Source: Podarcis tiliguerta (Eukaryota). Taken from it: a DNA stretch of 64,000 nt. Below, piece after piece: positions 37,666 to 62,769 of the stretch. A program made the position numbers and the translations under genes. The stretch lies in NCBI GenBank assembly GCA_965153285.1, contig OZ229111.1. One strand, 5' to 3'. Under the pieces are notes generated by a model. It worked only from the letters and a program-made list of their open reading frames with translations, was not told the origin of the DNA and searched no databases. Numbering within the stretch: the stretch's first letter is position 1; each line of letters opens with the position of its first letter.

Positions 37666-37684
37666 GTCCCCGCGCCGGGGAGGG

Positions 37685-38292: not shown

Positions 38293-39092
<800 letters not shown>

Positions 39093-40644: not shown

Positions 40645-40679
40645 TCAGACAAACCATTCTGTGTGTTTAAATCCAGCAG
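40645..40679 (-). CDS. RUN-PDZ-PTB gene terminal coding exon (AAGFKHTEWFV*)
   Basis: tttag| acceptor, TGA at 40647-40645; minus-strand AATAAA at 40403-40398. Confidence 0.87.
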
Positions 40680-43600
40680 CTAAAGAAACAAATGGTCATT
40701 AATCTTAAAATAATATTCCTGAAGTTGGCAGTGCTTGCTGCTCTAGCCATGGTTTTGAAAGAACAGAATTTGTCTCCTAACCACTAGCATGCTAGATATT
40801 AGGTGATTGGGATACTGACCTGGAAATCCTCATAGATCAAACAGAAGACTTCCTACTGTATTTCATACTAAACCCAAGTCCTTGAACATAATTAGAAATG
40901 CAGATAAACAATTACTGCGAAGCCTAATCTTATTAGCTTTCTAAGTCTTGGAATTACTAGCTTGCAAGTACACTAAGTATGCTTCATTAACAGGCTATAG
41001 AGGCCTTGCTACTTTTTAGTTGTACACCAAAGAACAAATATCCTTACCAATTCTTCTTATTATTTCCTCACTTTCATCTTCAGTGTTTGATTCAAATACA
41101 AGACAGTCGAAGGTGCTTTGTTCCGAAGACTCAGGTGAAACCCTATACAGTATAATGTATTGAAAATTATTCTTGCCTTCATTGCCAAATCAATCAAAAC
41201 AGGTTACACTAAAATACACATCCGCCTATGCGGATTTTGCAGGTGTATTATTAAACAAGATTGACACAATAGTGGATTAATTCCACTTCACTAGTGATGC
41301 TTCCTGGATGTTACATTATTGTGCAACGAACTTTAAAAGCCCTGAAATATTTGTGATGAGAAGTCACAGGATTTCAGAAGGAAGCTATGGCCTGTGCACA
41401 GCATTGAAGGCAGAATCATACATAGCCAGCTTGATACCCAACATCAGTACAAATGAATGCACAATAAAAGAACATCTGGAAGAGCCTTAAAACACAGCAG
41501 GGTAAAATAACAAAGTGACAGAACACAAAAAGATTGGGCAAATAAATGCAGCTGACTCCGAAAGCATGTAAGAATCTGGGCTTATCAGATTGGCAAAGGG
41601 AGGGAATCCCATAATGAGGTACTGATGACAACACACTGGGCAATATATTTGATATGCATGTGGCAGAATGAATCTTTGTTCATTCTGCCCCATCTTAAAT
41701 TTAACACTAATCCTTTAAGCACACTGGCAAGCTGAGGTACTGCCAACACATCGCTTCTGACCTTTACAGGACCTGGGGCCTAGCTCTTCATCCAAACTTG
41801 GGGGCATATTTCATTGTGAAAGTGCTGCTGTTGTGATGCACTGGAGTCAGGCTACAGACTCCAGCAGCAAATCTGGGGTCCCCCCCCATTATTTTGCTTC
41901 AGTTTTACAAAAGCATCAAAATTATGCTAATACATTGATGCATAAGCAAAGCCTGATCTACCAGTGGAAGATCAATGCTCTATATATACTTAACCCTTTT
42001 CAGAGATGGCACAAACCTTTACCCCAAACAATGCATGGGGGGGGGCATATTTGTAGTACTACTGTTGGGACGCGCCTAAGATCAGGTAGTGACTGGGTAG
42101 CAGGTCTCAACCCACCAGCTGAAAGGCCAGTGATGGCTAAACTAGGCCAGGGTGAATTTCCCCCCAGACAACCCAAGGTGCCTTGGGGTATTCCAAAGAG
42201 TATGTGCTCAAAAGCATGATTTACATAGGCTCGGAGTGTATAGTAAGGGATTTCAGCAGAATTGTTGGCAGGGAAAACTGAAAAGATCAACTCAAACTTC
42301 AGTCTGCTCTAAATGTATTGCTGCCACATGCAACTACACAGCCTGGGATAATAGAATCCTGGTGTAGTGTATCTCTAGGTATGTGGGTGGTTGTTATTTT
42401 TAACTCACACACTGCAGAAGGCGAAGAGATTGTTGCTGTCCAGACGCCGTCCCACACAGGAAATGTCTGTATAAGAGTAACGAAACAGAACCTGGCAACA
42501 ACATTGAGTGATCTGATAAGGCAGTGGCCTAGAACTGATTATTTACAATTTTATGCTCTTTGTTTTCTAAATGTGTGTGAATGGACCATGATCCACACAA
42601 TCAAATAGAGATTTTGTTGTTGATTTAAACAAATAGCTCCTCTACGTGCAACCTATCTTCCAGTAAATCACACACGTTATGGGCAAGTTCTACCTAGCAG
42701 AAAGCAGCTAAATTCATTGGCCTGCATTCTATGAATAGTTTTGACATAAAATATTTAAATATAGTCAGGACAAGCACAAACAGTAAAGAAAAGTACTCTA
42801 ACCTTTGAAGCAGCTTTCTCTTGAACAACGACTTCTGTTTCTTTGACATCAAATAAAACCTCCTGTGAAAATATATTCAAAATGTTCGAAACAATAATGG
42901 GTAAGTAAAATGCAGTGTTAACTGTCAAAACGCCTGCAACAGAAAATTAACAGATAAGGCCTGAGCATTTTGCTGGGATTTCAAGTCTTTTCCTCATTTT
43001 TGCTTCCTTCAACTTGGTGTGATTTGGGGTAGAAATAATCACAGTGATAGCCTCAAACTGATCACTTAACAGACTGCATGATTTTCACAAAATTGTCAAT
43101 GTAAACATTTTTATGTACGTCAGATAAAAATAGTTGGTGTCAATTTACGCTCTCAGATTTGCCCTATTGTAGTTTATAGCACTGACTTCAGTAGCTGTAT
43201 ATGGATTTTTTTTAAAAAAACCACAAAGTAGTTCTACCAATCTATACGTTTGATGTATTAATGTATTCACAAAAGAGTAATTTAAGCTCAGTCTCACCTA
43301 CCCCACAAGGTTATAGTGAGGATAAAGTTTGGGGGTAGGAGAGAAAGCAGAACAATGTACACAAGCCTTGAGCTTATTAGACAAAAGAATAATTTAAACC
43401 CACTGCTTTAAATTATGTTCCTGACATGAAGCACTCACCTGGGTTGAATAAAGATGCACATGTGAGTAAGTTGCTACATTATGAGCTACCCAGAAAACAA
43501 ACCAGTAGCAGCCTTGAGTGCCTTCACTGGAACAGCAATTGACTTTCTCCAGCACTGGGGAAACACAAGTCGCATGCTATGCCAGCTCATTCTGGCAACG

Positions 43601-46600
43601 GGGTGAAACAAATGTCCTTATTTATTTACAAAGCTCATCCACCCCATCTTTAAGAGGGAAACACTTGGGCATTCTGAGCTGCATAGCTCAGAAAGGGGCC
43701 ATGCAGCTAATTAATCTCCCTTTGGTCCATTCATGTTTTGTAAGCATTTCCTGGTATGGTGCGATGGCGCATCCGATGGTGGTGGCATCTTGCAGGTACA
43801 ACGGGCCGGATTCAGCTAAGTTAGTGTGCTAGCATAAGTCCCACTAAGCCATGGGGCCTTCCCCCCTCTTCCCATGGGATATGGTTCCATAGGGCAAGCT
43901 GAAACGCCGATGGAACAACTGGAACAGCGCAGCATTGAATTCCTCTTGAGTAGCAGCTGCTCTTGCATTGCTGCAGTGGATACTACTGTGGCTTATAATA
44001 AGGTCTCAGCGCTGTGGTCGTTTCAAACCACCTCCATCACTTGTTTGCTGGTGGGATCAGGCGTTTTTCGAAAAGCTCAGTCTCAGAAACCCACAGTAGG
44101 TGAGTTGTTGGCCAGGCAGACAGACTGGATGAGTCTAGAACCAAATTGTACAGAGAGAAGAGGCTGGGGCCCTGTATGTTTTCACTAAGATGGTGACACA
44201 ACTTCAAACCTTTATGTCCATATTTAAATGGCAAGGACTCGTGCGCAAGTAGTAAATTGCAAACATCAGCTTCAAGCAGTTTTAAGAGTAACTGTAGGCT
44301 GGGGTGATTGTCTGATTAAGCCCCCCCCCCCTTTTCTTTTTTGACAGCTTCATCTTCCCACATATGCAGGAGGGAGAGAAAGAAATATATCCTGTGTGTT
44401 TAATGGACTATAACCTTGAATTTTTATTTGCCTGCATTTCTATAGTACCCCAATATAAAGCGCTGTGCTCTGTCATAGAAATACAATCAAGGTGAAAAAG
44501 CATACAGTGGTACCTCGGGTTACATACGCTTCAGGTTACTCCGCTAACCCAGAAATATTACCTTGGGTTACAAACTTTGCTTCAGGACGAAAATAGAAAT
44601 TGTGCTCCGGCGACGTGGCAGCAGCAGGAGGCCCCATTAGCTAAAGTGGTGCTTCAGTTTAAGAACAGTTTCAGGTTAAGAACGGACCTCCGGAACGAAT
44701 TAAGTACTTAACCCGAGGTACCAATGTACAGGCAAAAATGCAATGGTCTTGGGAGCATAGGAGAAACATGAGAAGCTCTATACCATTCTTCTTTTAAAAA
44801 ATGGTAGAAAGGGGGGGGAAGGATCTCTTTAGCAGGTAGTGCATTAGAACTCAGGTCTCTCACTCCTCACAAATTGCATGCCAACCTGACAGGAAAAAAG
44901 GAGGTTGTTTAAGGAGCCAGGCTGTAAAGTATGTTGAGGAATGTGTGCTGTCTCTCCAAATCCTGACCTGCTGGTAGACTTATAAAGGTCTGCAACTAGA
45001 GATACGGCCACCATTTGGGTCTCTCTGTTGATTTTGTAGCCTTCTGTCTGGAATAAAATCAGTTTATGTACGTTTAGTGACTTGCTGCAGTGTTGTTTGA
45101 AGTGGCGACTTCTAGCTGCTGCAATTAAGTGACTGGTTGAGAAAAGTTCACTCAGGTCTCATATCCAATCTGGGACAGCAGTTCTATACTCATCAAGGCC
45201 AGGACTAGGCCTGGTGGTAGCTGACAGTGTGGTAGGGTAGAGGAAGAGGGCACACATTAAACACATTTTGGTGGTGGGGTGCATTAACCCCCCCCCCCCG
45301 AATTTTAAGAATTTACATATCACACAAAGGTACCTCAGGAATTTTAAAAATCTGAGATAGTCAACTCTTTTTCCTCACGCACATGATTTAAAGGAGGGTT
45401 CTCAGAGCTATTTCTAAAGAAATGTGCAACCGAGCGCAGAAGGTATTACGGAAACTGCTAACATGCAGAACTGAATGCCCAAAGAAGTAAAACCTTGTAG
45501 TAAATTAGCCGGTGCAGGCAGGGGCTGATGGGAGTGTGTAGTCTGCAGGGCAGCAAGTTGGGGGGGGGGGACCATAATGAATTGTTTGTGGTGAATGTGC
45601 CAAGCTAGGTTGCTCTGCTCCTCCTCACTCTGGCATTCCCTGAACCAGCCTTGCTCCTCCTGAACCATTGCTTGTAGTTTGTTTCGCTCCAACAAACCAC
45701 AATCTGTAAGCCAAGGCCAAACTTTGGCAACAGGTCAAGGTTTGTGGAATGTTTGATGGAAACAAATCATGACCTCTGGGTTCAGATGCCGAACGGTAAG
45801 ACAGGGATTATAGTTTGTTTTCGTCAAGCGTTTCTTGGCAGCTTTCATATGAAATTGTAATTCCTAGACTTGTAGAAGGGGGTATATATTTAGAGTATTC
45901 TTTCTCCAAAAGATCTACCAGAATTGTTATCACTATACTGCACAAATTCAGCGAATACAATTAAAGTTTCACTATTTAATAGCTTTTCAGATTCACCAAG
46001 TCTTTTTAAGCAATTATCTGCTTGCTGCTATTTTGTTTCTTTCCCTTCCACAACGATGACTACTGCTTAGTTGTCACAAGCCATTTGATCAAAGGAGGGA
46101 GAAAAGAAATACTTCAGTTCCAAATAGATTCTTTATTTTTTCCTCACAGGCTATAGGAGTACAAAAGTTGGGCCTGTCTCTCATCTTGTGTTCTTGACTG
46201 GAGAAGCTCAATAATTTTTGCGTACATCCCAAATTGGAGGGTTTTTGGTTGCTAGGCAAAAGCGTCTTTTCCTTTGAGAGACCTGGTTAAAATTTGGTTA
46301 GTTTGCTGGACTAGGGCTAGAGAGATCTAAGTTCAAATCCCACCTCAGTCATGAACTTCAGTGGGTGAATTTGGGCCAGACACCATCTATTAGTCTAATG
46401 TATCACAAAGGGTTATTGAGAAGATAAAGTTTGGCGGGTGGAGAAGAGAACAGAACATTGTACACTGCCTTGGGCTTACTTGAGGAAAGATAGGGGAAGA
46501 ATGAATAAAAAAAGTAAGGTTTGACTCTCCCACCTATCAGTAATTTTGCCCTCATAAGCTATAATCTGATTTAGCAATTCCTCACAAAGAAAGAATGGGC

Positions 46601-49600
46601 AAAGAGTTATTGCGGTCAAACTTCAGTCTGCTTAAAATTAAAAAACGAACAAAAATTGAGAGGAAAAACCAGACGTATGCAAAGGCAGAAATATACAAGA
46701 ATGCATCTAACAACTGTAAGCCCTACTCGTGTGCCAGTCTCCACATTTGGGAAAAATGTCTCCACATTTTGCACTGTTAAAGCAGGAAACGTACCTGTCG
46801 TGGCAAATGTTTCTCTAAAACCATAGGTATGCCTTGGTCTAACACCTCTTTGCTTCCATACTGAAAATAAGAATCGGAAAGGTGTAACAAAAATAAAAGA
46901 CATAAACCAATAGCAAGGAAAGCTAAACAATCCTCCCTTCTCTGTCCAAGACCCAGTCTCACCTTTCCTACATTGACGTGGCCTAAGTACCGCAGGTTGT
47001 ACAGCAGCCTGAGGAGAAAATGGTCACAATAATTAATCCACGGTGTCTATAAGTAGCTCATTCGTTTAGAGCAGGGGGAGGGGCTGGCAGTTCAAGCGAA
47101 ACAGGCCGATACCAGAACAAAATGTACATGGTGTGCAACAATTGTGACAGGCGTGTGCACATTTATGTGGCTGCTTTTCTCCACAATAATCAAGCGGTGA
47201 TTGCACACACCAAAATGGATCTCCTCCTTCTGGGTATATAATGAGAAAAGTGCCCATTTAAACATGCACGCACTAGTCACAATTGAGATCCATATTGTTT
47301 AACCATACCAGAGTGTAAAAACGTAACGTCGGCCCTACTGGCTCTCCACGATAACTACTGGCTCTGGGCAAGAGGTCTGTGCCACAAGAACAGGCTCTAA
47401 ATATGTGCACAACAACTGAAGTGGAATTCCTAAGTTGGCTTGACCTTAGAAACTGCTTTAACTCACTCCCCACTCACCTCAACTTTCACTGAAATCTTGT
47501 TTTGAATAAACATTCACAAACTTTTTATTTATAATAATCAGCTAAATAGTTTGAGGATCTATACAACTTTGCAACATGCAGAAAACAGCATTCTTAGAGA
47601 AACCAAAGACTGGAACTGAGGGAAGTCGTGGGGGTGGGGTGGGGGGGATTTTGTGTGGGAGGGGGGAGGGAGGAAAAATGGGGGGGGCAAGGATGATATG
47701 TTTTTGGATAATATGTCTTGTTATAATTTTGAATTTAAAAAAAAAACTTTCACTGAAATCTTATGTGCCTTCCCCTTTCAGTCCTCCTCATTCAACAGGG
47801 TACGGGGAGCTATTCTCTCTTTGGTAATATGCAGGGGTTGTTTTTTTAGCCCAAACACACTGGAACTCCATTCCAGCATCTCTCAGGTGGGCGCCATTGC
47901 CGTTATAAGAGAACAAGGGAGGCATTCATGATGAGTTCCGGCACCTATTTTTCCAGAAAAATAGCACTGGTAATATGGACCTTCCAAATCTTCCTCTCAG
48001 TTTGGCGTGGGATTGTCCCTTCATGGCCCTAGGTGTCTCAAAAGCACACCCAGTTGTAAACATAACACTGTTTTGCTGCTGTTGTGTGTCTCTCTCACGA
48101 ACCACGTGGTGATCAGCCTAGAGCTGTGTGGCAGGTGGAAAACAGCCCAAGGACCGTAACGTTCCCACCTCAATTACAGGCTGCATTCAGAATGAATCCA
48201 TGCTGACTACCTTTATTGTTACCGATTGCCGAAAGCTGGAGCCTGCAACCGTTTTGCTGCCGCTCTGCTCCCCTGGCAGCCCCTACCTGCCCCCCTGCAA
48301 GCACCGGTCCTCTTTCTTTTCCTTGTGCGTGTGCTCATGCTGGAGCTGGAAGCTGGGGATTTTCTCCTGGAGGATTTTCAGGTAGGGGAGAAGCGGCTTG
48401 TACATCCCTCCATCGTGCCACTTCCAGCGGATCAGACGGAAGCTCAGAGGCTTGCCCTTGTACTTCTGTAGCACTGTCCCAGCCTGAAGAGAAACAGAAA
48501 GGTTGAGAGCATGGGCAAGAATTTCTAGCACTGCTCACCTGGCACTAATCCCAATCATAGAGGTTACAAGCTTTTTTTCTGTGCTGTTCCCACAATACAG
48601 TGGTACCTTGGTTCTCAAACACCTTGGTACTCAAACAACTTGGAACCCAAAGTGTTTGGGTTGCGAACCTTTTTCGGAAGCTGAACATGCTCCATTTTGA
48701 GTGTTACACTTCTGATTTTAGTGTTACGCTTCTGATTTGAGTGCCACACTTCCGTTTTGAGTGTTACGCTGAGGTCTGTCTGTTTTTGCTATTTATTCTG
48801 CGTTTTTGTTTTTGCAGGTCTTTTTTTGTGTGACTGTGTGGAATCCAGTTCAGCTACTGATTGATTGATTGATTGACTGACTGCAGTACATTGTTTATCA
48901 CTTTCATTTTATGGATCAATGGTCTTGTTAGATAGTAAAATTCATGTTAGATTGCTGTTTTAGGGGTTGTTTTTAAAAGCCTGGACCGGATTAATCCATT
49001 TTGCCTTACTTTCTATGGGAAAGTGCTCCTTGGTTTTGGAATGCTTTGGTTTTGGAACGAACTTCTGGAATGGGTTAAGTTTGAGGACCAAGGTACCACT
49101 GTACATAAAGGAGCACATCTTCATATTTTTCTCCCATAAGGAGGAACGGGTCCAATAGAGGGACTGGTACATTCAGTCTGGGAAAGACACAATTCAGAGG
49201 CAGTATGACAGCCACCTTGAAATATCTGGAGGAGCGTCACATAGATGAAGGAGCAAAGTTCTTTTCTGGTAATCTAGAAAGGCTCAAACCAGTGTCTTTA
49301 AATTACAAGAAAAAGGATTCAGGCACTAAGTTCCAGAAAGAACTTCCTGACAGCACAAGCAGTTTGTCACTAGAAGAGATTGCCTTGGCAAAGTGGAAGT
49401 TGTAACTCTGTGAGTGGTACATTACAGTGAATAGAATTCTTTAAGGGAAGGAATGTGTTTCAAATGTGCTTTAAATATATGGCGTCCACACAGCCTGACT
49501 AGTCCTGCATGGGATTGCACAGTCATTAATTTCCATCTGTCAGGCAAGCCAGATCTGACACTTACATGGAAAGCATGAACAAAGCTCCCGGGATAAGATA

Positions 49601-50077
49601 TTCTGCCCCAGCCCTGACAGAAATACATGTAAGCAAACAGCTTGATTTGTTCAACTTTGCTATACTCAGAGGAAGCACAGTAAAAAAATTCTCTTGATCC
49701 AAAAAAATGCTGAAATATTTAAGTGATTGTTTTGTTTGTTTGTTTTTAAAAAAACTAATTAATTGTATCGCTAGCTCTATCACAACTGTCTGAATACTGA
49801 GGTTCAAGAAAGACTGGGCAATTTGTTTATAATATTAAGCTGTGGTTTCCCCACTAGCTGCAGTAGACAAGGAGTCTATAGCTTGCCGTGGTTTCAAGCA
49901 GATTCCTATGCATCCCCAATAGTTGTCTTGATCCCCACATTTCTCATACCTATAAACATTGTAAAAGAAAACTTTAAAAGTGAGCAAACCACTGGTATCA
50001 ATTTAATTTCTGAATTAAAGTAATTATAATAATTCTATTCATTCCTGCAGTGCAAAGCTCTATACTTTTTAGAAGAA

Positions 50078-50121
<44 letters not shown>

Positions 50122-53100
50122 CATTTTGTTTCCCAGTCTTTCTGTATCCCTCCCATACCCTCAATTCTTCACCATGATCTCCAGGTCAAACACCAGAGCT
50201 TTAGCTCTGCACAGTTCCCATAGCAACACCACACAGCCATCTCTTCTGCTCCTTTCTCAGGATCTCAGGCAACACAGCAGCCTTAGTCCCCCGAGATCAG
50301 AGCGTTCCCTTTCACACCTGTCCATTGCATGCGTTCCTCAGTGAAGATCCATTTATCTCATCAATAACATCCCCAACCAGCACCACCTCATCCACTGCTG
50401 CCTGGCTTTGGGGGAGCACATTTACGATGAAAATCCGTCCATCCAAATATCTGTGATGAGAAGAGAAGAAGAAGAAGAAGAGTTTGGATTTGATATCCTG
50501 CCTTTCACTCCCTTTAAGGAGTCTAAAAGCGGCTAACATTCTTCTTTCCATTCCTCCCTCACAACAAACACTCTGTGAGGTGAGTGGGGCTGAGAGACTT
50601 CAGAGAAGTGTGACTAGCCCAAGGTCACCCACCAGCTGCATGTGGAGGAGTGGAGACGCGAACCCGGTTCCCCAGATTAATGAGACTACCGCTCTTAACC
50701 ACTACACCACACTGGCTCTAGGGAGGGAGAGGAAGGGGTGGAGAGAGACAAGCCAAGGGCTCGCATTGAAGAGTTGAGGTACCACATACTTGAGGCAAAA
50801 GAAGGAAGATCACAGGGGAGAAAGAAATGATGAATGTCTTTTAAAAGAGATTTCTTTCTTTCTTTTGCTCAGAATGATGGGAAAATAATAGATTCCACAC
50901 CAGGGATAGGGAACTGGTGGCCTTCCTCATGTTGTTAGACTTCAACTCCCATCATCCCCGAGATCAATGGCGATGTTTGCTGGGGCTGATGGGAGTTTGA
51001 GTCCAACAACATTTGGAGGGCCACAGAGTTCCCCATCAACTACTCGTTCATACATTCTTATTTTCTGCATCTATAGGCTACCTTTCAGGGTTTCTCTTTT
51101 CAATGTGGTTTCCAACAACCACCACCACAACCTTTAATGTTAACCAAACTAGCACAAGCTCCTTGAAGATGAAGGGCTGCAAATGGCATGGTTAAGATCA
51201 ACCCAAACTGTGCAAGGCAACCCTCACACAAGCAGCTTGCTTTGTGGATTTCTTGTCCACTCGGCTGTACTAGAAGAAACCACCCACATGATCGGTTGCT
51301 TATGCAAACGGTGTCTTTGGCAAACATGAAAAATGGGTGTAGCATTTTGTGGGTCAGGCTTCACCAAAGCCCCCTTCATTAGAGGCTCATATGTAGGTGG
51401 TAAAAATATGTACTCAATCATTGGCACTGCGCCTCTTCTACTTCTGCAAAATTCTACTTCTGCAAAATTATTAGGGCAAAAAGACTATTTGGCTCGGATA
51501 GCCCACGGCGTTTAAAACCAGCAGTAGGTTGCACAAAGACAAGGCACAACGGAAATCCTTCGCAAGCCAGAGCGCAGCAGCTAATTTGCACATCTGTTGT
51601 GTACCATCAAGGTAATTGCACAAGCTTGATGGATGCCAAAACTGGCAGACACATTACCGTTCTTGAGAGACATCCTTTTATGAAATGCTTAAGCCTCATG
51701 GGGATGGGAATCTCAAACGTGAATGAACAAAACTTGGAGGTGGCTCCTCAAAAATAATGAATTGCTAGAAGTTACTGTGTAAGCCTCCCAGCAATTGATT
51801 ATACATCACTGTTCTTTCTTTGTACGTTCCTCTTTATGTAGCATTTGTTACTAAATAATAAAAATGATTTTTTAAAAATCAAATAATTATTGGAACTCTT
51901 CTTAGCTGGTTTCTGTGGCGTTTGCACTTATTCCCATCTGATTTTTTCCTTCTGCAATGCTGTTGATTGGGATTCTTGGGGGTTTACAAGCTCCTCTCAG
52001 AAGTGCTCTAAAAGGCCATGTACGGCCTGGGGACTACATGTTGCACAGTAGTAGGCTGAACTCCCTTGTCAACACTAGGATTTCTACCTTGCAGAAAGCG
52101 CTAATCTTTATTGCTAGGCACAGGCTCAGGTCACGGTTTGTCAAAGCCACTGCTCTTAAGTTACAAATAACCAGGGGCGAGGGCATTCAGTCATTCTGTA
52201 CGAGCACAGAATTTGCTACTGGGTACAGAATTCATTGAAAATGACAGGATTTGTTTTTAAAATCCAAGTTTATGGTTACATTTTTAGTTTGCCTTCCCTC
52301 CAAAGAGCTTCGCAGAGAATGCATGTTTCCCTCCCTTCCTCCTCACAATAACCCTGCGAGGTAGTTTAGGTCAGGCGTAGGGAAACTCGGCTCTCCATCA
52401 TCCCTGACCACTGGTCCTGTTAGCTAGGGATGATGGGAGTTGTAGTCCCAAAACATCTGGAGGGCCAAGTTTGCCGATGCTTGGTTTAGGCTGAGATATA
52501 GTGACTGGCCCAAGTTTGCCCGGCAAACTTTGCAGCTGAATGTGCATTTGCACTTGAATCTCCAACGTTTTATAGTCCAACTATCAAACCATGGCGGTTT
52601 CCCTTTGTATCCTTTTATGGATGCAAAGATTAGCACATTTGCAAAGTCAATCAGGATCCAATATGGTTTCAAATAGGATGGGGGACAGCGTGTTAAGATT
52701 CCATTGCAGGGGGCTGGACTAGAAGACCCTCTGGGTCGCTTCCAACTCTACAATTCTATGATTAGTCTGGATGAATGTGGGCAATGGTTGGTGAGATCTC
52801 AGAAGTCAGGCAGGGAGATGGATGGAATTTCCAGGCCTGGGAGAGGCCCTGCCCCTTGCCAGCTCCATGCTTTTAGCACAAGCGGAATACACTCCACAAA
52901 ACTGTATCAGGCTGGCCTTCGTTTCAGTGACCGACTCTCATTGTTCCCTATGGGCTTTATCTTACAGATCCACACCAGGATATTTATTTAAAACAATGGA
53001 TTTTGTGCAGAGGAAGTTCAAAGCAACGTAAGGATGTGCCAGGTCTCTTACCTGAGCACCATTCCCAGCTCCCTGCAGGGGACAGTTTCGTAGGTCAGGC

Positions 53101-56100
53101 ACACCTAGAAAGCAGTGCAGTGGTACCTCAGGTTACATACGCTTCAGGTTACATACGCTTCAGTTCACAGACTCCGCTAACCCAGAAATAGTGCTTCAAG
53201 TTAAGAACTTTGCTTCAGGATGAGAACAGAAATTGTGTTCCGGCGGCGCGGCGGCAGCAAGGGCCCCCATTAGTTAAAGTGGTGCTTCAGGTTAAGAACA
53301 GTTTCAGGTTAAGAACGGACCTCCAGAACGAATTAAGTACTTAACCCGAGGTACCACTGTATTTATCAGTGTGGTATCCAGCAAGCTTGAATAAATCCTC
53401 CTTCAGAGCCTTGGTGTAGATGAGAAATTTTGCTTCTTATAGGGGCGTTGGCTTTAAAGGAAGGCAGTGGAAGGCCCTGAAGCCTCAAATTCTCTATTTA
53501 TCCGCAAAAGGCTCATTGGGATGAAACACTGTCATGATGCTATACTGCGTGACTTCAAGGTTAGAGGCTTCTATTGCAATCCACTTTTAGATATCACCAC
53601 ATCTTAAATTAAATGATCCCTAATCTGCAGAGCAAATGATCAAAGCCCAGAGATGCTTGACTCAGACAAGCAGACCAAGCATAGTCTTGCCCTGTCTTTA
53701 CTGATAACAAACAGCAAAATAATAAAAATAAAATCAGCCACAGGCCAGTGTCACAAAGCCAAGGATGGAGAATTTGTGATTCTCCAGATGCAGTTAAGAC
53801 TCCAACTCCCATCAGTCCCCTGTCATTACTGCCAATAAACAGGAATAATGGGAGTTGAAGTCCACCAATACTTGGGAGTGTCACAGAGTCCCCATCGCTT
53901 CATGAGGTCAACCTGAGGCTGATTTTGGCAGTGCAGAAGTACTTCAAATAATGTACCACAGATCCTTCCCCTACCCCAAATACCACAAACGGAAAGATGC
54001 ACACATATTTAAAAACAGCTTAGATTGATGCAAACTGGAATCCTTGTTCTGTGGCCTAGCTGAAGCCAGAGCCCTACAGCATTTCAGTATAGCTGAAGTT
54101 GTCCAAGTACAATGATTTAAAATTCTAAGTGTAGCTGTCAATGGACTCGGGTTCAGACTCAGTTCAGAGAGACATAGAGTTCAAGTTTCTCAAATAGGAC
54201 TTTATTAAAAGGTTGAATGAAAGACCCATAAAGCACTTTAAAAATTCACAAAGAGCCACAAAGTGATTTAATCAAGCAGAGAAATCCCAGAGGTGTTACC
54301 ATTTCCCTGCCACAAACCTCCATGCTTCTGAGACATTAAAATGTAAATAGAAAAAAACCACCACATAAACATAAAGTTCCAGTCCAGACTAGAGCTGCCA
54401 TTTTTGGCCTGTTGGTACAGGTGTGAAACAGATGGTGCCATCCCTATCTGTAAGCAGCAAGATGGGAGAATATCATGAATTGTGCAAAAGGGGGTATTGA
54501 GAGAGAGGACTAAAGCTTCTTACCGGAAGTTGCCAGCTTTCATCCAAGAAACTGGAATTCTACAAACAGAAAGAATGGCAAACTATGAGAGGTCAAGCCA
54601 GAGGTTAAAAGGAAAGATGGGAAAATACAGCTATTAATCCAGCCTTGTTCGGACTACATCTCTCGTCAGAACCAGCCAGGATGTGCTCCCTGGAGCTGCT
54701 GGGAGTTGTAAATCAAAACATCTGGAGGGTATTAAGCAGTGGAAGCTGCATGAAACTTAGGTCCCCAAATCATCAACTACTGTACCTGCAAATCTAGGGA
54801 GAAATTCATTTCTGTCACCACCAGCATCAGAGAGAGGAAAGGCTCTGGAAGGAGGAAATAAGAGAATCAAAAATTGCTGCCGGATTTCTGACCAACTTTA
54901 TACATTCATTTATCGGTAAGTCAAGGGACACACTGAGAATACGAACCAAGAAATCTCAAACTTGCAATGGAAGCAAGACTCCCTAAAGTAATATTTGAGC
55001 CTTTCAAAAATGTAACCAACACAGAACAAAGGCAAGTTTCTCAGCTGGCGCCACTCACTTGTACCTCACACAGATTGAACAGAAAATAAAATCTTTACAA
55101 ATAGTAACGGTGGTTCTCACAGATCAGCTGCATCATGCCTTGGTGGGCAGGTGTGTGAGGTCACTCAGGTTGCACCAACAGGTTGAGAAGGCGAAATGGG
55201 AACTTTGCCCACAGGCTCAATCAAGCCGTATACACGAGAAGGATTCAGCAGCTGCTTATACCGTGTAGCAGTTAAAATTGTGTAGAGATCTGCAATCCCT
55301 CCATAGCTACTCTGGGAATCTAAAGAAGCAGATTGGTGGTGACTCTGGATCTAAGCACATAGCTGGAAGCTTCAGGCAGTCACCTTCCTAGGAAGCTATA
55401 CATGTCACACTATCAGCTTGTAAGTGACAACTGTGCTGCTCTGAACCATATGAATCTCCATAAATTTAAATAATTTTTTAAAATATGAGTTGAGGCGGCG
55501 GCTGTGTGGGACTTGCATTTCCCCAAGCAATTACCTGCCTCTCCTCAGGGAAGCCTGCCTCACATCCAGGAACCACGGCAATAAAGTCTCATCGCCACTT
55601 GGCATTCATCTCCTCAAACCAGATTGTGGGGAATTCAGTGTCCAGAATTCAACTGCCTTCCAGGTGAAGTTGTTAAATGAAGCCTGACCCAGTAGCGGAT
55701 CCCACAACAGTGATAAGGAAAAAGTCACCATACAAATAGCTTTTGGGATGATATTCTAATAGAAAACAGGTAAGGAAATGCACTTTTCTGCACTTTAATC
55801 CACAACACATTACCCTTCCCCAGAGAAAAGCACTAAAAGGAAGTATGGCTCTTTTCTCTTCTCGTTCCCAATAAGGACACTGCAACCTTGGCTATGAGCC
55901 AAACTGTAGTTGCCCTCACCTTCATGCCTCCTGGTGCCACTGAGATCTGCTTCCCATGTAATGAAGGCAAACACGAGCTTACCACTATTGTGTGTGCACA
56001 TGGTTAGAGACCCATGGCTAGTCCCAGCTCCCTGGGTGCTAAGAACATAAGAGCTGTTGGAAATGTGTGTTTGTCACATACAAACACAAAGATTTAAACA

Positions 56101-56521
56101 CATACATTAGAGACCTTGACCTCTTTGGAAGGCTGTAAATAAAATGACCTAATTGAACATGGCAAAGTGTGAAGCAGACTTCTTTGTTGCTGCACATGGA
56201 CAATTATTGGTGGGAGAGGTGAAAGAGAAGGGTGAAGGGGCCAGGAAAAGTCACAGATCAATCCTCAGCAATACTACAGAACACTTACGTTTACTATTTA
56301 CAGCAACATGATTGAGGAAAAAGCTGAGAAGAGGAGTAACGGAAGAAAAATGTGGAAACAAGACAAAAGGGAGTAACATAAAACTCAAAACAGCAGAATC
56401 CTGTAACTGATCACCCTTAATGAAGTAACAAATAATGAGCCACAATTTTAATGAGTCCTGAAGAAGATTCAGTTGCTTGCATTTTGAAAGGCTCGTTATG
56501 GGAAAACCTGCCGGTGTTACT

Positions 56522-56571
<50 letters not shown>

Positions 56572-59500
56572 TTTTGGTGTAAGAATGTGCAAGCTTATGA
56601 ACGGCATGAAGGCTTTCATCCTATTTTTTTAGGCCTCCAGACAGCAATGGCACAATCTCGACACGTCTGGCACTTCAGAAACCTATATAATACATTGACT
56701 AGCTGGAGGTTAAGGATGATTTTAATAACCCCAGAGCTCAAAACAGATGTTGTTACATACTACACAGATAGTGCCTCCAAGGCAAGCATGAAACGGTGCA
56801 TCTGCCTTGCCAGCAAAGCTTATAAAAGGACCTGACAATCTGTGAGTCCAGAAAGGAGGGTATCACAATGAGAAAGACAAAAACCAGCCACTGATGTGGA
56901 GGGAGGGCACAGCAGAATTCACTGGCAAGGGAAACGTGGAGCTACCAGAGGCTGCAAGCCTTTTCACAGGTAGAGGGCCTCAGCAGCATCCTGGATGCCA
57001 CGGGTTAACAGGGCACACAAAGAACTCAAGTGTACGGCCTTAACCACCTTATCACCTAGCATTGTTGTTGGATGAGATTCCACAGTGGGACTGTGCAGAA
57101 TATCATATCTACATTGGTCCTGCAATATGCCTGTACTTTATTGAAACAAATATGCCCGTTCACAACTTTATAATTAGCAACCTTGGGGATGCGAGGGTTT
57201 TTTTTAAACAAACAAACAAACAAACAAACAACATTAATTGCATCCTTTTAATAATAAAATGCGGTTATTATGTAGCCAATATGCAACACATCACTGGGCA
57301 AACTAGACATGTTGGCAACAGACTTGTGTGTCAGAAAGTTTCCTGATTCCTTATAAAAACTGGAGTGGGCAATATAAAGTGCTACACTTACTCTGCCCCT
57401 TACCTGGGCATCATTTGCCCTATACATTTAAAACAGTATCATACCACTTTAGGCTAAGGGCATTTAAACTTGTTAGGACGCTCTGGTACTAGGTTAGGAC
57501 ACACCTGTTTAAGATGTATGGTGAAGATGGGCCTTAACTCCAATGAAGAATAAATTTAGACATCAAGAATGCTGCCATTGAGCTCTGGTACCTTTTCAAC
57601 TTTGTACAGTGCAGAACCCAGTAATTCAAAAGCAAGGTTGTTATAAAGCAAGGCACAATAAATTTCAGTAACATACTGTGCTACAACAGAATGCAAAATG
57701 ACTCTCAGGGCACTTGTTATAACTTCCAGAGGCAGCCATGTTAATGCATTTTGTAGCCAAGCAACAAGAAGTCTTCTAGCACCTTAAGGCCTAATACATT
57801 TAATACAGCACAAGCTTTTGGAGAATAAGAGTCCACTTCATTAGTGTGATGACCTGCTCTCTTGCACAATGCAATGAGTGTACAGAGATGACTCTTACCA
57901 GATAAGTCTTCATTGCCTAGGATGGAGGTCATTGGATCATACCACTGAAATAAAAACAACTCTGAATAATTATAATAATTTAAATAAGCTGACCACAAAG
58001 GTACGTACGCATCAGGAACAGGAAACAATTATTAACCATCATAATATCTAGAAAGGAGCATTAATTTAGGTTTGGGATTTTAGGGTCGTCGTTCCCCCCC
58101 CCCCCCCCCAGTTTAGGAGCTAAGTATTACCACTAGCAGGATCACAGGAAGCTGTCTAACACTAAACCAGGCCATCGGTCCACCTCAATCAGTACTATTC
58201 ACACTGACTAGCAATTGGCTCTCCAGGGGCACAGGAAGGAATATGCCACATCTACCTGTAGGTGGAACTTGAGATGTTCTGCAAGTAAAGCATATGCTTT
58301 GCCGCTGAGTTATAGCTCTTCCCCAAATGGGGCCATAGGTTTAACTGCCAAGTTATAATGAACAATTGCAGATTCTTTCTGTTAAAGAACATTAGCCCTA
58401 GACTGAGTACATTTAAAAATCAGCACTGGTTTCAAGATTATAAGCATGGCGAATACAGGAATATCCCGCAGACCAGGTCTTTAGCAAAGCACACCTACTA
58501 ACTTATGTGTCCACCCGACGGAGGCCCCAAGAAAAGAGCATAACAAAGACAGGTGTCTGAGTACTCTTATTATTCAAAATAACTTCTCCTTTTAATTGCT
58601 CTGAATTACGTCATGTCCCCACCTCAAGCAGCCTGGAAGATCTGATCAACTGCTTAACAGCAACAGCTAGTAACTTCCTATTCAAAGCCAGGCGCAGGAA
58701 GTACCGCCCTCGTCCTTGTGCTGTCAGCACCTTCTCACAGGAATTAGTTTTCTCAATCATCATTGACAGGAGGGTCATGCTATAGGAAGAAAAGACTTTG
58801 TTATCACGGGGTACAGAAACAAAAACCACGTTCAAGTCACTTCAAATGGAGATGGTTCTATTTCAGGGTGAAAAATTATGCCCCCCCCTGCCATCCTTTC
58901 CTTGATACCCCTCAAAAGTCAGCATGAAGGATTCTGGGAATTGTGACTCCCCTGTGAAGCAGGTCAGATTCCTAATACCCCCCACTCCCACCACAGGCCA
59001 ATTTGGACAGGTGAGCAGGACCACCCATCTGTCAGTCATCTGGCATCATGGTGATGTCAATGTGACTGAGAGCTTTTAAAGTTCAAAGACGGTCCCTGTA
59101 AAATGGAAGTCTAAAGGAAAATGGCCATTGTGTGAGACACACACTCTCTTGAACTTAAAAGAAGGTGATGCCAAAAGCCAAACAACCGTATGGGTATTAT
59201 TACAAAAACTATGAGCACCTCTAATTGTGGGGCGACCTCGGAGTGTAAGAAGAACCCTGCTGGATCAGGGCAAAAGCCCATCTAGTCCAGCATCCCATTT
59301 CTCAGAGTGACCAACCAGATGCCTGTCGGACAACCAGACGGCCACAAACAGGATATGAACACCATAGTTACTCATTTATGGACATCAGGTTAAATAAGAA
59401 GAATTGTGAGAGGAGGATAAGAAAAAGCAGAAAATTAATAAAAGCCTGTAGCTGTAATCATGCTTATACAGTGGTACCTTGGGTTAAGTACTTAATTCGT

Positions 59501-61510
59501 TCCGGAGGTCCGTACTTAACCTGAAACTGTTCTTAACCTGAAGCACCACTTTAGATCATGGGGCCTCCTGCTGCTGCCGTGCCGCCGGAGCACGATTTCT
59601 GTTCTTATCCTGAAGTAAAGTTTTTAACCTGAAGCACTATTTCTGGGTTAGCGGAGTCTGTAACCTGAAGCGTATGTAACCTGAAGCGTATGTAACCCGA
59701 GGTACCACTGTATATAAAAAGGAAAAGCAGAAAATCAAGTTCCTCTTACATTTGCAGTATCATAAAGTACAGGCCACCCACCTGGGATGGGTTACTTGCG
59801 GAAGCTGTTCCAGCCAGTGCCAATAGTCCTTTCTCTTGAACCCCAGAACGGGCTCTGAGGAAGACAAGACGACTTTCCTTTAGGAAGAAAAGCAGCACAG
59901 CAAAGCGCTGCATCGCACAACCAAAGATTACAGGCACCATTTCCTTGGCACCAGGAGGTGCTCAGTTAGAGCACATTTACACTGGACGCATTCCTTGGGG
60001 GTTCAGGGTGCTGCCAGGAAGGCTCTGGTTCACTCTGTTGCACACATCGGCAATCTGTGCATGGTGAAAGGCTGGCAAGTGTGATGTTTTCTACTGCAAC
60101 CCCCCTCCACACACACACCAAACGCTTTTGCACCAGCAGAAACTGCAATTAGATTTTGCAACTTATGCAGATTTCTGATATCTGCAACAAGACACGAATC
60201 CCTCTCCCACCTCGGTCTCTGTACTGCAGTGGTCGTCTACATTGCCACTGCAAACTCCCTCATATGACATGCCTGATCAACCCTTCAATCTTCAACAATT
60301 TTAAACTGCATTGATGGAAAGAACCCTGGAAACCCTAGTTCTGGAAGGGTACTAAGACCTCTGAAATATAAAAATTGTAGTGGTCAGAGTTCTTTGGGAA
60401 CAATAAAAAGTACAGTCAAACCTTGGAAGTGGAACGCAATCCGTTCCAGAAGGACAATTGACTTCCGAAATATTTAATTTCCGAGGCGCAGCTTCTGACT
60501 GGCTCTTGCAATCAGAAGAGCCAATCGGAAGCTGCTTGTCTGCCACGTCAGACGTTCGGCTTCCGAGGCATGTTTGAAAACCAGAACACTTACTTCCGTT
60601 GACGTTCGGGAGCCGAAACGTACGGCAATGTAGACGATCGGAAACCGAGGTGTGACTGTAGATTTATGAGATTAGTGGTCTTAAAAGGGCTGGGGGAAAA
60701 CTGTCTTTTCCTGGCTACAAAGGACCCCAAAGAAGCCACCAGATGAGCCTCTCTGGGAACAATATTCTGCTGCTGAAGTGTCATCATCACCACCGCCAGC
60801 AACAAATTACGCTTAGGGCCAGCATCATGGGTGGGCATGGCTAAGCACTTGCCTAAGGCCCACACCTCAGGAGGGGCTCAGTGACTGGAGCCCCCGGGAC
60901 CTGCTTCTCCTCTTCACCACTTATCTGCTTCTCACTCTTGCAAGAAGGTGGTGGTGAGAAGGAGGTGGAGCTGCCACTGCCTGCTTGCTCACTGGGTCTG
61001 TTTGCCATGTAAGCAGGTGGCAGCAATGATGAGGCAGAGGAGGAAACAGCAGCTGGCAACAACGGCAGGGAGGGGGCAGATAGACAGGGGGAGGGAGTCT
61101 TGCCCTGGGGCCCCCACCAGCAGAGATGGCACTGGCTGCACCTTACCTGGCAGTGAGATCAGCTTCACAGGGCTAGGGCCTCTGAAGTAAAAATCCAGGG
61201 AGATACATATAGGAGGAGGTGAACTTTCAGGGATTATTATTACTTATTATTATTAAAAATACTTCCAGCCCACCTTTCCTTGTAGGGCTGGTGCCGTCCC
61301 ACTATTGCCCCCAACTGCAGTGCAACCCGCTCCCCGCAAAGGGAAATCTCCATACACAGTATTCAAACACTGTCCATCTTTGGTACAGAAAAAGCCACTC
61401 ACGTTTTATTCCTTTGCGAAGGATCATTTCCAGGACCTCACAAAAGGACTGTAAGTGTGGGGAGGTGTCTGTGTAAGGGCTGCTGCTCCCCTGAAGGTTG
61501 AGGATACATA
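40645..61510 (-). CDS. Uncharacterised RUN-PDZ-PTB domain adaptor protein, 15 coding exons in window (414 full codons + stop); first coding exon probably beyond window end
   Basis: Exons 61403-61510, 59782-59854, 58623-58779, 57899-57944, 54786-54844, 54524-54559, 53052-53104, 50318-50450, 48287-48483, 46963-47008, 46795-46860, 42803-42862, 42409-42491, 41048-41142, 40645-40679; all AG/GT bounded, phases chain without stops (1247 nt = 2 + 415 codons). Confidence 0.92.
41048..41142 (-). CDS. RUN-PDZ-PTB gene exon (VSPESSEQSTFDCLVFESNTEDESEEIIRRI)
   Basis: tag| acceptor, G|GTAAGG donor; PTB FxCxVF strand and C-terminal helix. Confidence 0.9.
42409..42491 (-). CDS. RUN-PDZ-PTB gene exon (VLFRYSYTDISCVGRRLDSNNLFAFCSV)
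   Basis: cag| acceptor, GT|GTGAGT donor; PTB IS...FAF motif. Confidence 0.9.
42803..42862 (-). CDS. RUN-PDZ-PTB gene exon (EVLFDVKETEVVVQEKAASK)
   Basis: cag| acceptor, AAG|GTTAGA donor. Confidence 0.87.
44505..44726. mobile_element. Tc1/mariner MITE, family A (opposite orientation to 23089)
   Basis: TA|CAGTGGTACCTCGGGTTAC...CGAGGTACCAATG|TA. Confidence 0.88.
46795..46860 (-). CDS. RUN-PDZ-PTB gene exon (YGSKEVLDQGIPMVLEKHLPRQ)
   Basis: cag| acceptor, CAG|GTACGT donor. Confidence 0.88.
46963..47008 (-). CDS. RUN-PDZ-PTB gene exon (LLYNLRYLGHVNVGK), PTB start
   Basis: cag| acceptor, AAG|GTGAGA donor; YxxxYLGxVxV PTB signature. Confidence 0.9.
47832..47969. mobile_element. Degenerate hAT-like MITE
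   Basis: cagggg..tttttt / aaaaatagcactg termini with internal inverted ggaactc/gagttcc. Confidence 0.5.
48287..48483 (-). CDS. RUN-PDZ-PTB gene exon (AGTVLQKYKGKPLSFRLIRWKW...DRCLQGGR), PDZ end and linker
   Basis: cag| acceptor, AG|GTAGGG donor, 197 nt. Confidence 0.9.
48598..49101. mobile_element. Longer (about 500 bp) Tc1/mariner non-autonomous element with internal 20-bp tandem repeats
   Basis: TA|CAGTGGTACCTTGGT...ACCAAGGTACCACTG|TA; tttgagtgttacgcttctga-like units near 48695-48770. Confidence 0.82.
49130..49385 (+). mobile_element. Decayed CR1 LINE fragment
   Basis: ttcagtctgggaaagacaca..tcagagg..atgacagcc...aaatatctg...gaaagaacttcctgac is typical of the CR1 ORF2 end. Confidence 0.6.
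50078..50121. repeat. (GAAA)n microsatellite
   Basis: Direct reading. Confidence 0.95.
50318..50450 (-). CDS. RUN-PDZ-PTB gene exon (YLDGRIFIVNVLPQSQAAVDEVVLVGDVIDEINGSSLRNACNGQ), PDZ core
   Basis: cag| acceptor, CAG|GTGTGA donor; IFIxxVxxxSxAxxxxxxxxGDxIxEING PDZ pattern. Confidence 0.93.
50466..50718 (-). mobile_element. tRNA-derived squamate SINE (Squam3-like) with (TTC)n tail
   Basis: Minus-strand head GAGCCAGTGTGGTGTAGTGGTTAAGAGC (A box)...GGTTCGCGTCTCC (B box); older relatives near 46282-46500 (+) and 63770-63925 (-). Confidence 0.82.
52372..52483. mobile_element. Short hAT MITE inserted in an older SINE
   Basis: caggcgtagggaaact...agtttgccgatgcttg; 8-bp flanks gtttaggt/gtttaggc; relatives near 10424-10560, 22800-22890, 50901-51040, 53758-53900, 54640-54740. 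Confidence 0.7.
52705..52763 (+). mobile_element. CR1 3' end
   Basis: ggactagaagacc...ttccaactctacaattctatgatt (CR1 ATTCTATG terminal unit). Confidence 0.7.
53052..53104 (-). CDS. RUN-PDZ-PTB gene exon (VCLTYETVPCRELGMVLR), PDZ GLGF-equivalent loop
   Basis: tag| acceptor, AG|GTAAGA donor. Confidence 0.88.
53118..53359. mobile_element. Tc1/mariner MITE, family A (same orientation as 44505)
   Basis: CAGTGGTACCTC...GAGGTACCACTG|TA; duplicated internal unit ggttacatacgcttca. Confidence 0.88.
54524..54559 (-). CDS. RUN-PDZ-PTB gene exon (NSSFLDESWQLP)
   Basis: tag| acceptor, CCG|GTAAGA donor, 36 nt, phase 0/0. Confidence 0.85.
54786..54844 (-). CDS. RUN-PDZ-PTB gene exon (EPFLSLMLVVTEMNFSLDLQ)
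   Basis: cag| acceptor, CAG|GTACAG donor; RUN C-terminal FxL block. Confidence 0.88.
56524..56570. repeat. (CA)n microsatellite
   Basis: Direct reading. Confidence 0.95.
57899..57944 (-). CDS. RUN-PDZ-PTB gene exon (WYDPMTSILGNEDLS)
   Basis: cag| acceptor, G|GTAAGA donor; RUN WYxxxSIL motif. Confidence 0.88.
58623..58779 (-). CDS. RUN-PDZ-PTB gene exon (MTLLSMMIEKTNSCEKVLTAQGRGRYFLRLALNRKLLAVAVKQLIRSSRLLE)
   Basis: tag| acceptor, GAG|GTGGGG donor; RUN core GRxRxxxRLALxxKxL. Confidence 0.92.
59469..59710. mobile_element. Tc1/mariner MITE, family A (same orientation as 23089)
   Basis: TA|CAGTGGTACCT...GAGGTACCACTG|TA. Confidence 0.88.
59782..59854 (-). CDS. RUN-PDZ-PTB gene exon (QPVLGFKRKDYWHWLEQLPQVTHPS)
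   Basis: cag| acceptor, AG|GTGGGT donor; RUN DYWxxLE-like motif; this frame is not in the ORF track. Confidence 0.88.
60413..60658. mobile_element. Tc1/mariner (Tigger-like) MITE, family B
   Basis: TA|CAGTCAAACCTTGG...CCGAGGTGTGACTG|TA; related to 18394-18612. Confidence 0.78.
61403..61510 (-). CDS. RUN-PDZ-PTB gene exon (xCILNLQGSSSPYTDTSPHLQSFCEVLEMILRKGIK), RUN block A
   Basis: (CT)n-rich acceptor cag|, C|GTGAGT donor; FCxxLExILxxGxK RUN motif. Confidence 0.9.
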
Positions 61511-61616
61511 CTGAAGGAGAGAGAGAGAGAGAGAGAGGTTTCAAATACAGACTGGCAATAGAATGAGTTAAAATCTAATATTTGTATTTTTGCTATACTT
61601 TTCTTCTGTTAAGATA

Positions 61617-62145: not shown

Positions 62146-62769
62146 TTCTGTTAAGATACCAAAGCCCTAATTGATAAGACTATAGTACAGAGCTTGGGAA
62201 GGTGTCTTTAAGAAGGGCAGTTCCCCATTCCCACCCTCCAAAGCAAGCTATCATGCCCTGATGCTACAGAAGTTCCCAGCTCTCCTTTGTCTCTGGGTTG
62301 GCAACTGGAGAGGAGGGGCTAGAAGGTGTACCCCACACAGCTGGAATTAGTCCAGGGCCATCTGGTTGCTGACTTCTGCAAATCTTAAACTACAAGGCTA
62401 CTCCTTCCCTGATCATGGCATGTACAGAATCTCTGAGAACACAACTTTGGGTGCCAAGGCATGGTCCGAAGCACATTATGCAACCACCTTGCTAAAGCTG
62501 TCTCTTCCTTTTGCCAGTTCTCAGAACTTTTGGGGAGTGGGGGTATATTTCAAATAATTTGAAAACTGGGAGGTACTGTTCCTATTTACAGAGAGGTAGC
62601 CTTCTTTATCTATCTGCAGCAGCAGAAATAGAAAAAGGTTTTGTGGCACCTTGAAGACTAAGAGATTCCAGAGTTTAACACGCACTACATCAAGACTTTC
62701 TTCTCTCTGACCTGAATCTTCCAGCATTTGACTTCCCTGAATGTCCATGAGTTGTAGTCTTATGAGAAA

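Follow-up and report, generated by a model that had tools for sequence, protein, structure and literature searches.

A RUN-PDZ-PTB gene of the lizard Podarcis tiliguerta, orthologous to zebrafish si:ch211-250n8.1 and encoding a putative cytosolic bridging adaptor

Introduction

RUN, PDZ and PTB domains are textbook modules, and no studied protein combines them in RUN-PDZ-PTB order. The best-known adaptor that carries both a PTB and a PDZ domain is Mint/X11/LIN-10 (APBA1-3), in which a Dab-like PTB is combined with two PDZ domains in the order PTB-PDZ-PDZ and the conserved C-terminal tail is itself a PDZ ligand. The RUN proteins PLEKHM1, PLEKHM2/SKIP, FYCO1 and RUFY3/RPIPx continue with PH, FYVE, coiled-coil or LC3-interacting region modules, none of them with a PDZ or PTB domain, and we know of no human RUN protein that has either. 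In ARH/LDLRAP1, GULP1/CED-6, Numb and Dab1/2, clathrin/AP-2 boxes or coiled coils follow the PTB. Here we analyse a stretch of 64,000 nucleotides (nt) from contig OZ229111.1 of Podarcis tiliguerta (assembly GCA_965153285.1; hereafter the window), whose minus strand carries a gene for a RUN-PDZ-PTB protein.

The lizard protein shares features with each of these systems. Its residues 1-176 align across the whole RUN fold of PLEKHM1, SKIP, FYCO1 and RUFY3/RPIPx (8jc5, 8jca, 7bqi, 2dwg/2cxf), with Foldseek target template modelling scores (TM) of 0.64-0.76 at 20-25% identity, and the blocks ..LE.ILRKG.., DYW and QGRGRYFLRLAL are shared with known RUN domains. As in Mint/X11, a Dab-like PTB is combined with PDZ and a conserved C-terminal tail is present; the Mint PTB structures 4dbb, 3sv1 and 1aqc are among the best fold matches to the lizard PTB, and in the ESM Atlas the nearest unrelated clusters are PID+PDZ clusters, one of them lin-10-like (score 0.78, a lead only). 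In contrast to Mint, there is one PDZ domain instead of two, the Munc18- or CASK-binding N-terminus is lacking, and PTB identity is 15-18%. The likeness to ARH, GULP1, Numb and Dab extends to the PTB fold and a family-profile match, whereas the lizard PTB is C-terminal and preceded by RUN and PDZ. The C-terminal helix of this PTB ends in an invariant Gly-Phe pair (G419, F420), which would correspond in position to the NPxY-contacting Phe of Shc and Dab1.

Gene model

Fifteen coding exons on the minus strand, running from 61510 to 40645, are joined by AG/GT splice sites in consistent phases with zero internal stops (Table 1). The exon set was rebuilt by tblastn of database homologues against the window, which returned 15 collinear exons, and the boundaries were taken from the splice sites in the flanks: all 15 exons have an AG acceptor behind a pyrimidine tract, and 14 of the 15 a GT donor, the last one ending at the TGA stop. 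Together they comprise 1247 nt, i.e., 414 complete codons, a split first codon and TGA, and they cover residues 14-427 of a product of 427 residues. We number them as coding exons 2-16, exon 1 being located beyond the window; a scan of the three minus-strand frames of 61511-64000 for the conserved N-terminus (M..K-E-P-L-L) did not find it. Exon 1 is expected to contribute 12 residues ending ...PLLGTLK and one base. The codons of V13 (only the last two bases of which are in the window), Q49, S73, E141, R190, R300, V385 and A417 are split, and the seven complete junction codons read CAG, AGC, GAG, AGA, AGG, GTG and GCT, respectively. An initial annotation of this DNA had proposed an intact gene of 15 exons and 414 codons with the same two end coordinates, which tblastn and splice-site reading reproduced; the RUN, PDZ and PTB motifs that it quoted were likewise all found in stop-free minus-strand stretches from 61.6 to 40.6 kilobases (kb).

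Every exon body and all seven complete junction codons are identical to a Podarcis lilfordi protein ("uncharacterized protein LOC114590625", isoform X2; P0171). Two to three residue differences separate the window exons from Podarcis raffonei and P. muralis, and 12 from Zootoca, with 97-99.8% identity to the proteins of other lacertids; the sequence by itself thus points to a lacertid source, Podarcis being the most likely genus. The exon model is non-random, chance being excluded, and the gene is confirmed to be real and intact in the lizard. Whole-protein analyses were run on the database proteins P0170 and P0171, while the window exons were searched one by one. In other species, Logan contigs of ~1.5 kb represent spliced mRNA, because the full protein of 423-457 residues is encoded in them (P0160, P0242, P0245, P0259, P0275). 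Some bird isoform models, such as Grus americana isoform X3 (P0006), skip the part encoded by exons 10-11 (PDZ end, linker and first PTB strand), owing to either alternative splicing or model error. Downstream of the stop codon, the AATAAA listed in Table 1 is the only minus-strand copy before the 3' region of H3-3B.

Domain architecture

The soluble protein of 427 residues is laid out as RUN (~1-176), PDZ (~181-256) and a Dab/Mint-type PTB (~300-420), with a conserved helix (263-275) and then a short disordered linker (~287-299) between PDZ and PTB. This architecture, which the initial annotation had read from motifs, is supported by Pfam, by a family profile searched against the PDB, and by AlphaFold2 with Foldseek, so that RUN, PDZ and PTB matches were obtained both by profile and by fold. 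When nine minus-strand open stretches of the window were run against Pfam, three single-exon pieces were scored: RUN at 24.5 bits (threshold 22), PDZ at 22.7 (23.2) and PID at 16.1 (20.9). In the full protein P0170, RUN (PF02759) reached 56.3 bits over residues 34-160. The Pfam PDZ domain exceeds its threshold in the stickleback (28.1 bits), caecilian (25.7) and snake (24.0) orthologues, and a precomputed PF00640 match is on record for skink, Pogona, Anolis and several invertebrate orthologues.

All PDB sequences were also compared with a profile built from 49 members of the family. Its RUN part matched FYCO1 (4.5e-10), PLEKHM1 (2.8e-9), RUFY3 (1e-7) and SKIP (1.1e-5), its PDZ part PATJ (3.2e-11) and also ZO-1, PSD-95, CASK and MPDZ, and its PTB part ANKS1B (9.3e-6), ARH (1.1e-5; 3so6), GULP1 (2.1e-5) and Numb-like. 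The single lizard protein already matched the PLEKHM1 RUN domain in phmmer (3.3e-7, residues 5-176).

AlphaFold2 gave a predicted local distance difference test (pLDDT) of 82 with 49 sequences, and a mean pLDDT of 88.5 and a predicted TM of 0.65 with 129 sequences. Low-confidence stretches in the former were 287-300 and 421-427; in the latter only residues 287-292, 296-298 and 425-427 fell below pLDDT 50. Foldseek against the PDB, run on the first model, superposed the all-helical RUN fold on solved RUN domains (FYCO1 7bqi, E 4.7e-8, target TM 0.71; also RPIPx, SKIP, PLEKHM1 and NESCA). The PTB, a PH-like beta sandwich with a C-terminal helix cap, was superposable on solved PTB domains, and Mint1/2, X11, ARH, AIDA-1, APPL1, GULP1, Numb, Fe65 and Dab1 were matched with probability 1.00. 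For Mint1 (4dbb), ARH, AIDA-1 (8ym2), Numb and Dab1, E was 1e-7 to 1e-5 and target TM 0.63-0.81, with 0.74 for ARH 3so6 and 0.77-0.81 for Fe65 PTB2. The PTB domains matched all belong to the phosphotyrosine-independent, Dab-like class. The strands and helices of the PDZ domain stand in PDZ order in the AlphaFold2 model, and its carboxylate-binding loop (x-hydrophobic-G-hydrophobic) is present as R-E-L-G-M-V-L in exon 8, where G186 is nearly invariant among 129 sequences.

In the same 129 sequences, from lizard to insects, residues C36, E40, W60, R98, R102, G371, G419, F420 and T423 are invariant. Hardly any variation is seen in the connector 161-182 either, which has pLDDT above 90 in the deeper AlphaFold2 run; RUN and PDZ may thus form one unit.

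Conserved C-terminal tail

Conservation peaks in the nine residues at the end of the protein (G-F-x-[R/H]-T-x-aromatic-x-V), where the top-residue fraction averages 0.90; this motif is new relative to the initial annotation. Nearly all vertebrates have G-F-K-H-T-E-W-F-V, annelids and nemerteans G-F-E-R-T-H-W-F-V, and arthropods G-F-Q-R-T-H-F-A-V or G-F-H-R-T-H-W-A-V, so that the lophotrochozoan tail ends in THWFV and the arthropod tail in THFAV or THWAV. Across the 129 sequences no variation occurs at G419, F420 and T423, and very little at F426 and V427. Class II PDZ ligands have a terminal Val, an aromatic residue at -2 and a free -1 position, and the tail, conserved across Bilateria, looks like such a ligand in its sequence. 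It would be read either by another PDZ scaffold or, between two molecules, by the PDZ domain of the protein itself. A predicted complex of the PDZ domain (166-262) and the C-terminal 32 residues (396-427), run without controls, gave a score of 0.31 (mark 0.34), which weighs neither way on binding. We do not claim Mint-like autoinhibition within one molecule, as residues 421-427 are of low confidence and outside the PDZ groove in both models.

Phyletic distribution and gene tree

When exon 4 (58778-58623, 52 codons) was searched against 1.84 billion representative proteins, 39 matches were returned, several of them full-length proteins of 360-435 residues, from birds, turtle, gecko, teleosts, sturgeon and tube worm; of the other 19 of the 39, the ten looked up are Logan fragments that carry no taxon information. 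The family profile search listed birds, teleosts, lizards, snakes and a caecilian among its matches. The lizard protein as a query found 333 homologues, and counts across searches were 333-378. Among its best 120 of 333 matches, to which the taxa given here for this query refer, are lacertids at 97-100% identity, other squamates at ~72-87% (full-length entries), a turtle, an alligator, birds (~58-73%), caecilians, newt, axolotl and many frogs (57-72%), lungfish, coelacanth, sharks, rays and chimaera (~58-61%), and sturgeon and tarpon (55%); all three amphibian orders are thus represented. A tube-worm query added nemerteans, a chiton, bivalve and gastropod molluscs, an acorn worm (hemichordate) and decapod and stomatopod crustaceans, and further a centipede, a termite, a katydid, sawfly and gall-wasp Hymenoptera and a sea spider. 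A third ESM Atlas cluster with the RUN-PDZ-PTB architecture has Platyhelminthes as its commonest phylum, and flatworms probably have orthologues too. No fly or nematode orthologue turned up among the proteins reached in the general searches. The initial annotation had the gene kept in sauropsids, which is too narrow: it is found in sharks, rays, chimaera, fish, coelacanth, lungfish, amphibians and many invertebrate phyla.

In a maximum-likelihood tree (43 sequences) branches are short and the branching matches that of the species, in the order chondrichthyans, ray-finned fish, lobe-finned fish, amphibians, squamates, and then turtle, alligator and birds. The squamate clade is supported at 100/99, and the Podarcis protein falls within the vertebrate clade. 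The broad distribution and the species-congruent tree with short branches argue for an old single-copy bilaterian gene that was inherited vertically.

No mammal was found among the best 120 of 333 lizard-protein matches, nor in the other match lists. The suspected absence from mammals thus fits the protein searches, since the best 120 matches reach tarpon at 55% without a mammal, and these searches are consistent with a gene present in every jawed-vertebrate class except mammals. If real, this absence would be a loss, because mammals nest within the tetrapod clade.

Proposed function and alternative explanations

The window holds coding exons 2-16 of the Podarcis orthologue of the single-copy RUN-PDZ-PTB gene si:ch211-250n8.1, whose product we infer from its domains to be a cytosolic adaptor that would link a small GTPase with receptor tails. 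We consider this reading as a whole likely. A small GTPase in its GTP-bound state would be the docking site of the RUN domain, whose nearest relatives, the RUN domains of PLEKHM1, SKIP, RUFY3 and FYCO1, suggest an Arl8, Rap2 or Rab type. The PTB domain may bind a receptor through an NPx[Y/F] motif of its cytoplasmic tail, with no need for phosphotyrosine, and the PDZ domain would hold a C-terminus, while the protein's own tail might be captured by another PDZ scaffold or by its own PDZ domain in another molecule.

Several points weigh against this proposal. In the lizard protein P0170 the PDZ (PF00595, 21.5 bits vs 23.2) and PID (PF00640, 20.0 vs 20.9) scores are just below the curated thresholds. 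In neither of two AlphaFold2 runs is the tail docked into the PDZ groove of its own chain, so that tail docking of the Mint type is not predicted for the lizard protein; the tail is modelled instead, at low confidence (pLDDT 34-56), as extending the final PTB helix. The protein P0171 may have been predicted from the same assembly, in which case its identity to the exons reflects agreement with an annotation pipeline and not expression, and the Podarcis gene is known here from genomic DNA and gene models. To our knowledge, not every RUN domain binds GTPases, and no binding partner is known for any family member.

The same architecture could also belong to a signalling or junctional scaffold, in which RUN, like that of RPIPx/RUFY3, would bind Rap2 or another GTPase related to it in the Ras family, and PDZ and PTB would gather receptors for adhesion or polarity at the plasma membrane in the manner of Mint, CASK, Numb and afadin-type scaffolds. 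We regard this as a less probable alternative, albeit one to be taken seriously: the RPIPx/RUFY3 RUN domain ranks with the best matches in both sequence and fold, the PDZ domain is matched best by the polarity and junction proteins PATJ, ZO-1, CASK and MPDZ, and the top fold matches of the PTB include Numb and Mint, whereas the endolysosomal transport factors PLEKHM1, SKIP and FYCO1 are equally good RUN matches. The matches thus fit such a scaffold and a vesicle-cargo adaptor alike. A bolder and rather doubtful extension of the bridging adaptor would be an ancient bilaterian protein whose RUN-PDZ unit reads an Arl8 or Rab GTPase on endolysosomal or secretory carriers, whose PTB selects LDLR, APP or integrin-type NPx[Y/F] receptors, and whose tail inserts into a PDZ domain, either that of a partner scaffold or that of a second copy of the protein, and thereby switches or polymerises the adaptor. 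On this view an entire link in cargo sorting would have disappeared in mammals and been taken over by other adaptors, and the family would have escaped study by being absent from mammals and from the fly and nematode proteins reached.

That a mammalian orthologue exists, but has diverged, is unannotated or has been fused to another gene, seems improbable to us. The match lists cover the best 120 of 333-378 homologues, the searches were made on proteins, and many of the fragment matches are Logan contigs without names, which leaves such an orthologue some room. Yet chondrichthyans and ray-finned fish appear at 55-61% among the best 120 of 333, and no mammal does despite closer kinship and heavy annotation; moreover, pipelines that assign the best curated match gave RUFY4 or tensin-like phosphatase names to orthologues, suggesting that no named mammalian orthologue was there to be matched. 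Less credible still is a decaying or never-expressed relic or an annotation artefact. Such a reading could draw on a Podarcis gene known from genomic DNA and gene models, with exon 1 and the promoter outside the window, but it conflicts with a frame intact across 414 codons and 15 introns, 60% identity to sharks, residues invariant out to insects, a gene tree that follows the species tree with short branches, and the full-length spliced mRNA contigs of other species.

Names and state of knowledge

Database names for the family are "uncharacterized", "hypothetical" or evident mis-names only, and in the literature searched no paper dealt with the gene, under its zebrafish clone name or its LOC numbers, or with the RUN-PDZ-PTB architecture, which bears out its description as uncharacterised. 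Named gene models of the same gene are zebrafish si:ch211-250n8.1, LOC114590625 (Podarcis) and LOC103277829 (Anolis); these do not differ from the window gene and are automatic models with no assigned function or literature. Orthologues from Komodo dragon, alligator gar and sea slug are recorded as "RUN and FYVE domain-containing protein 4" or "RUFY4", and that from a spadefoot toad as "tensin-like C1 domain-containing phosphatase" (group P0198, P0271, P0273, P0251). These mis-names were taken from a single shared domain and suggest the absence of a named mammalian counterpart. Membership in the RUFY family was rejected, as Pfam finds no FYVE domain and the C-terminal half is PDZ and PTB, and so was membership in Mint/X11 (APBA), as the one PDZ domain is upstream of the PTB and the N-terminus is a RUN domain.

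The gene is already annotated by pipelines while the family is unstudied, and what is contributed here beyond the existing gene prediction is a domain-level description and a phyletic pattern. A single-copy family of ~430 residues, clearly constrained in animals as far apart as insects, annelids and birds, has no name, paper or known partner, and it has probably been overlooked because mammals apparently lack it. The same absence makes it a clean case of an old cell-biological component apparently dropped by mammals. Zebrafish, Xenopus and chicken all carry the gene, which makes its function directly testable, and the conserved C-terminal tail offers a concrete, falsifiable handle.

Genomic neighbourhood and repeats

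The window has ~40% G+C and one run of N at 39513-39678, downstream of the H3.3 stop. The adjacency to H3-3B proposed earlier holds: the H3.3 exons on the plus strand and the RUN-PDZ-PTB gene stand tail to tail, separated by a few hundred bases. UNK (minus strand) and H3-3B (plus strand) have facing CpG-island promoters and are therefore head to head. In human, H3-3B is, as we presume, followed by GALK1.

Table 1. Positions of the coding exons of the RUN-PDZ-PTB gene and of other features in the window (UTR, untranslated region; CDS, coding sequence; "P0171" followed by numbers, identical to these residues of P0171)
Feature	Position	Strand	Content	Evidence
Exon 2	61403..61510	-	108 nt; residues 13 (split)-48 and first base of 49; start of RUN region, motif ...FCEVLEMILRKGIK	CT-rich tract before AG; donor GTGAGT; tblastn matches; P0171 14-48
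Exon 3	59782..59854	-	73 nt; residues 49-73, partly split; RUN motif KDYWHWLEQL	AG/GT; P0171 50-72
Exon 4	58623..58779	-	157 nt; residues 73-125; RUN core QGRGRYFLRLALN	Own open segment Pfam RUN 24.5 bits vs 22; 39 library matches; P0171 74-125
Exon 5	57899..57944	-	46 nt; residues 126-141, WYDPMTSILGNEDL	AG/GT and phase; P0171 126-140
Exon 6	54786..54844	-	59 nt; residues 141-160; final long RUN helix	AG/GT; GAG=E141; P0171 142-160
Exon 7	54524..54559	-	36 nt; residues 161-172, NSSFLDESWQLP; RUN-to-PDZ connector	AG/GT; P0171 161-172; N161 to P172 nearly invariant (n=129)
Exon 8	53052..53104	-	53 nt; residues 173-190; first PDZ strand and carboxylate-binding loop (ELGMVL)	AG/GT; P0171 173-189; G186 nearly invariant
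Exon 9	50318..50450	-	133 nt; residues 190-234; PDZ core	Own open segment Pfam PDZ 22.7 bits vs 23.2; AGA=R190; P0171 191-234
Exon 10	48287..48483	-	197 nt; residues 235-300; PDZ end, conserved helix (263-275), disordered linker (~287-299)	AG/GT; P0171 235-299
Exon 11	46963..47008	-	46 nt; residues 300-315; first PTB strand (YLGHVNVGK)	AG/GT; AGG=R300; P0171 301-315
Exon 12	46795..46860	-	66 nt; residues 316-337; first PTB helix	AG/GT; P0171 316-337
Exon 13	42803..42862	-	60 nt; residues 338-357; PTB strands	AG/GT; P0171 338-357
Exon 14	42409..42491	-	83 nt; residues 358-385 (ISCVGRR...FAFC); PTB strands	AG acceptor, donor GTGAGT; P0171 358-384
Exon 15	41048..41142	-	95 nt; residues 385-417; last PTB strand and C-terminal helix	Own open segment Pfam PID 16.1 bits; GTG=V385; P0171 386-416
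Exon 16 (CDS part)	40645..40679	-	35 nt; residues 417-427 (AAGFKHTEWFV) and TGA 40647-40645; conserved C-terminal tail	AG acceptor; GCT=A417; P0171 418-427
Candidate poly(A) signal AATAAA	40398..40403	-	~245 nt past stop; implies short 3' UTR	Pattern search
H3.3 exons, last two coding	38704-38853, 38955-39092	+	Signature A-A-I-G; intron-containing gene	Sequence
UNK CCCH zinc-finger exons	11159-11218, 14477-14530, 16357-16422	-	At 11-16 kb
CpG islands	32501-33500, 37501-38500		UNK promoter side and H3-3B promoter side, respectively

Just upstream of exon 2, the stretch 61501-62000 is mildly CpG-rich (G+C 0.54, CpG observed/expected 0.69) and could be an alternative promoter or the first exon of another isoform. 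An open minus-strand stretch in intron 1 (62838-62999) resembles the C-terminal part of the reverse transcriptase of a CR1/L2-type long interspersed element. A dispersed repeat like a short interspersed element (SINE) is found in three intronic copies of 190-245 nt that are 88-92% alike, at 44538-44734 (+), 53118-53362 (+) and 59461-59710 (-). The copy at 53118-53362 stops 12 nt from the acceptor of exon 8, and the upstream splice-site region of this exon is therefore partly repeat. Introns of the gene also hold a (GT/CA)n microsatellite at ~56520-56570 and a GAAA-type simple repeat at ~50050-50160.

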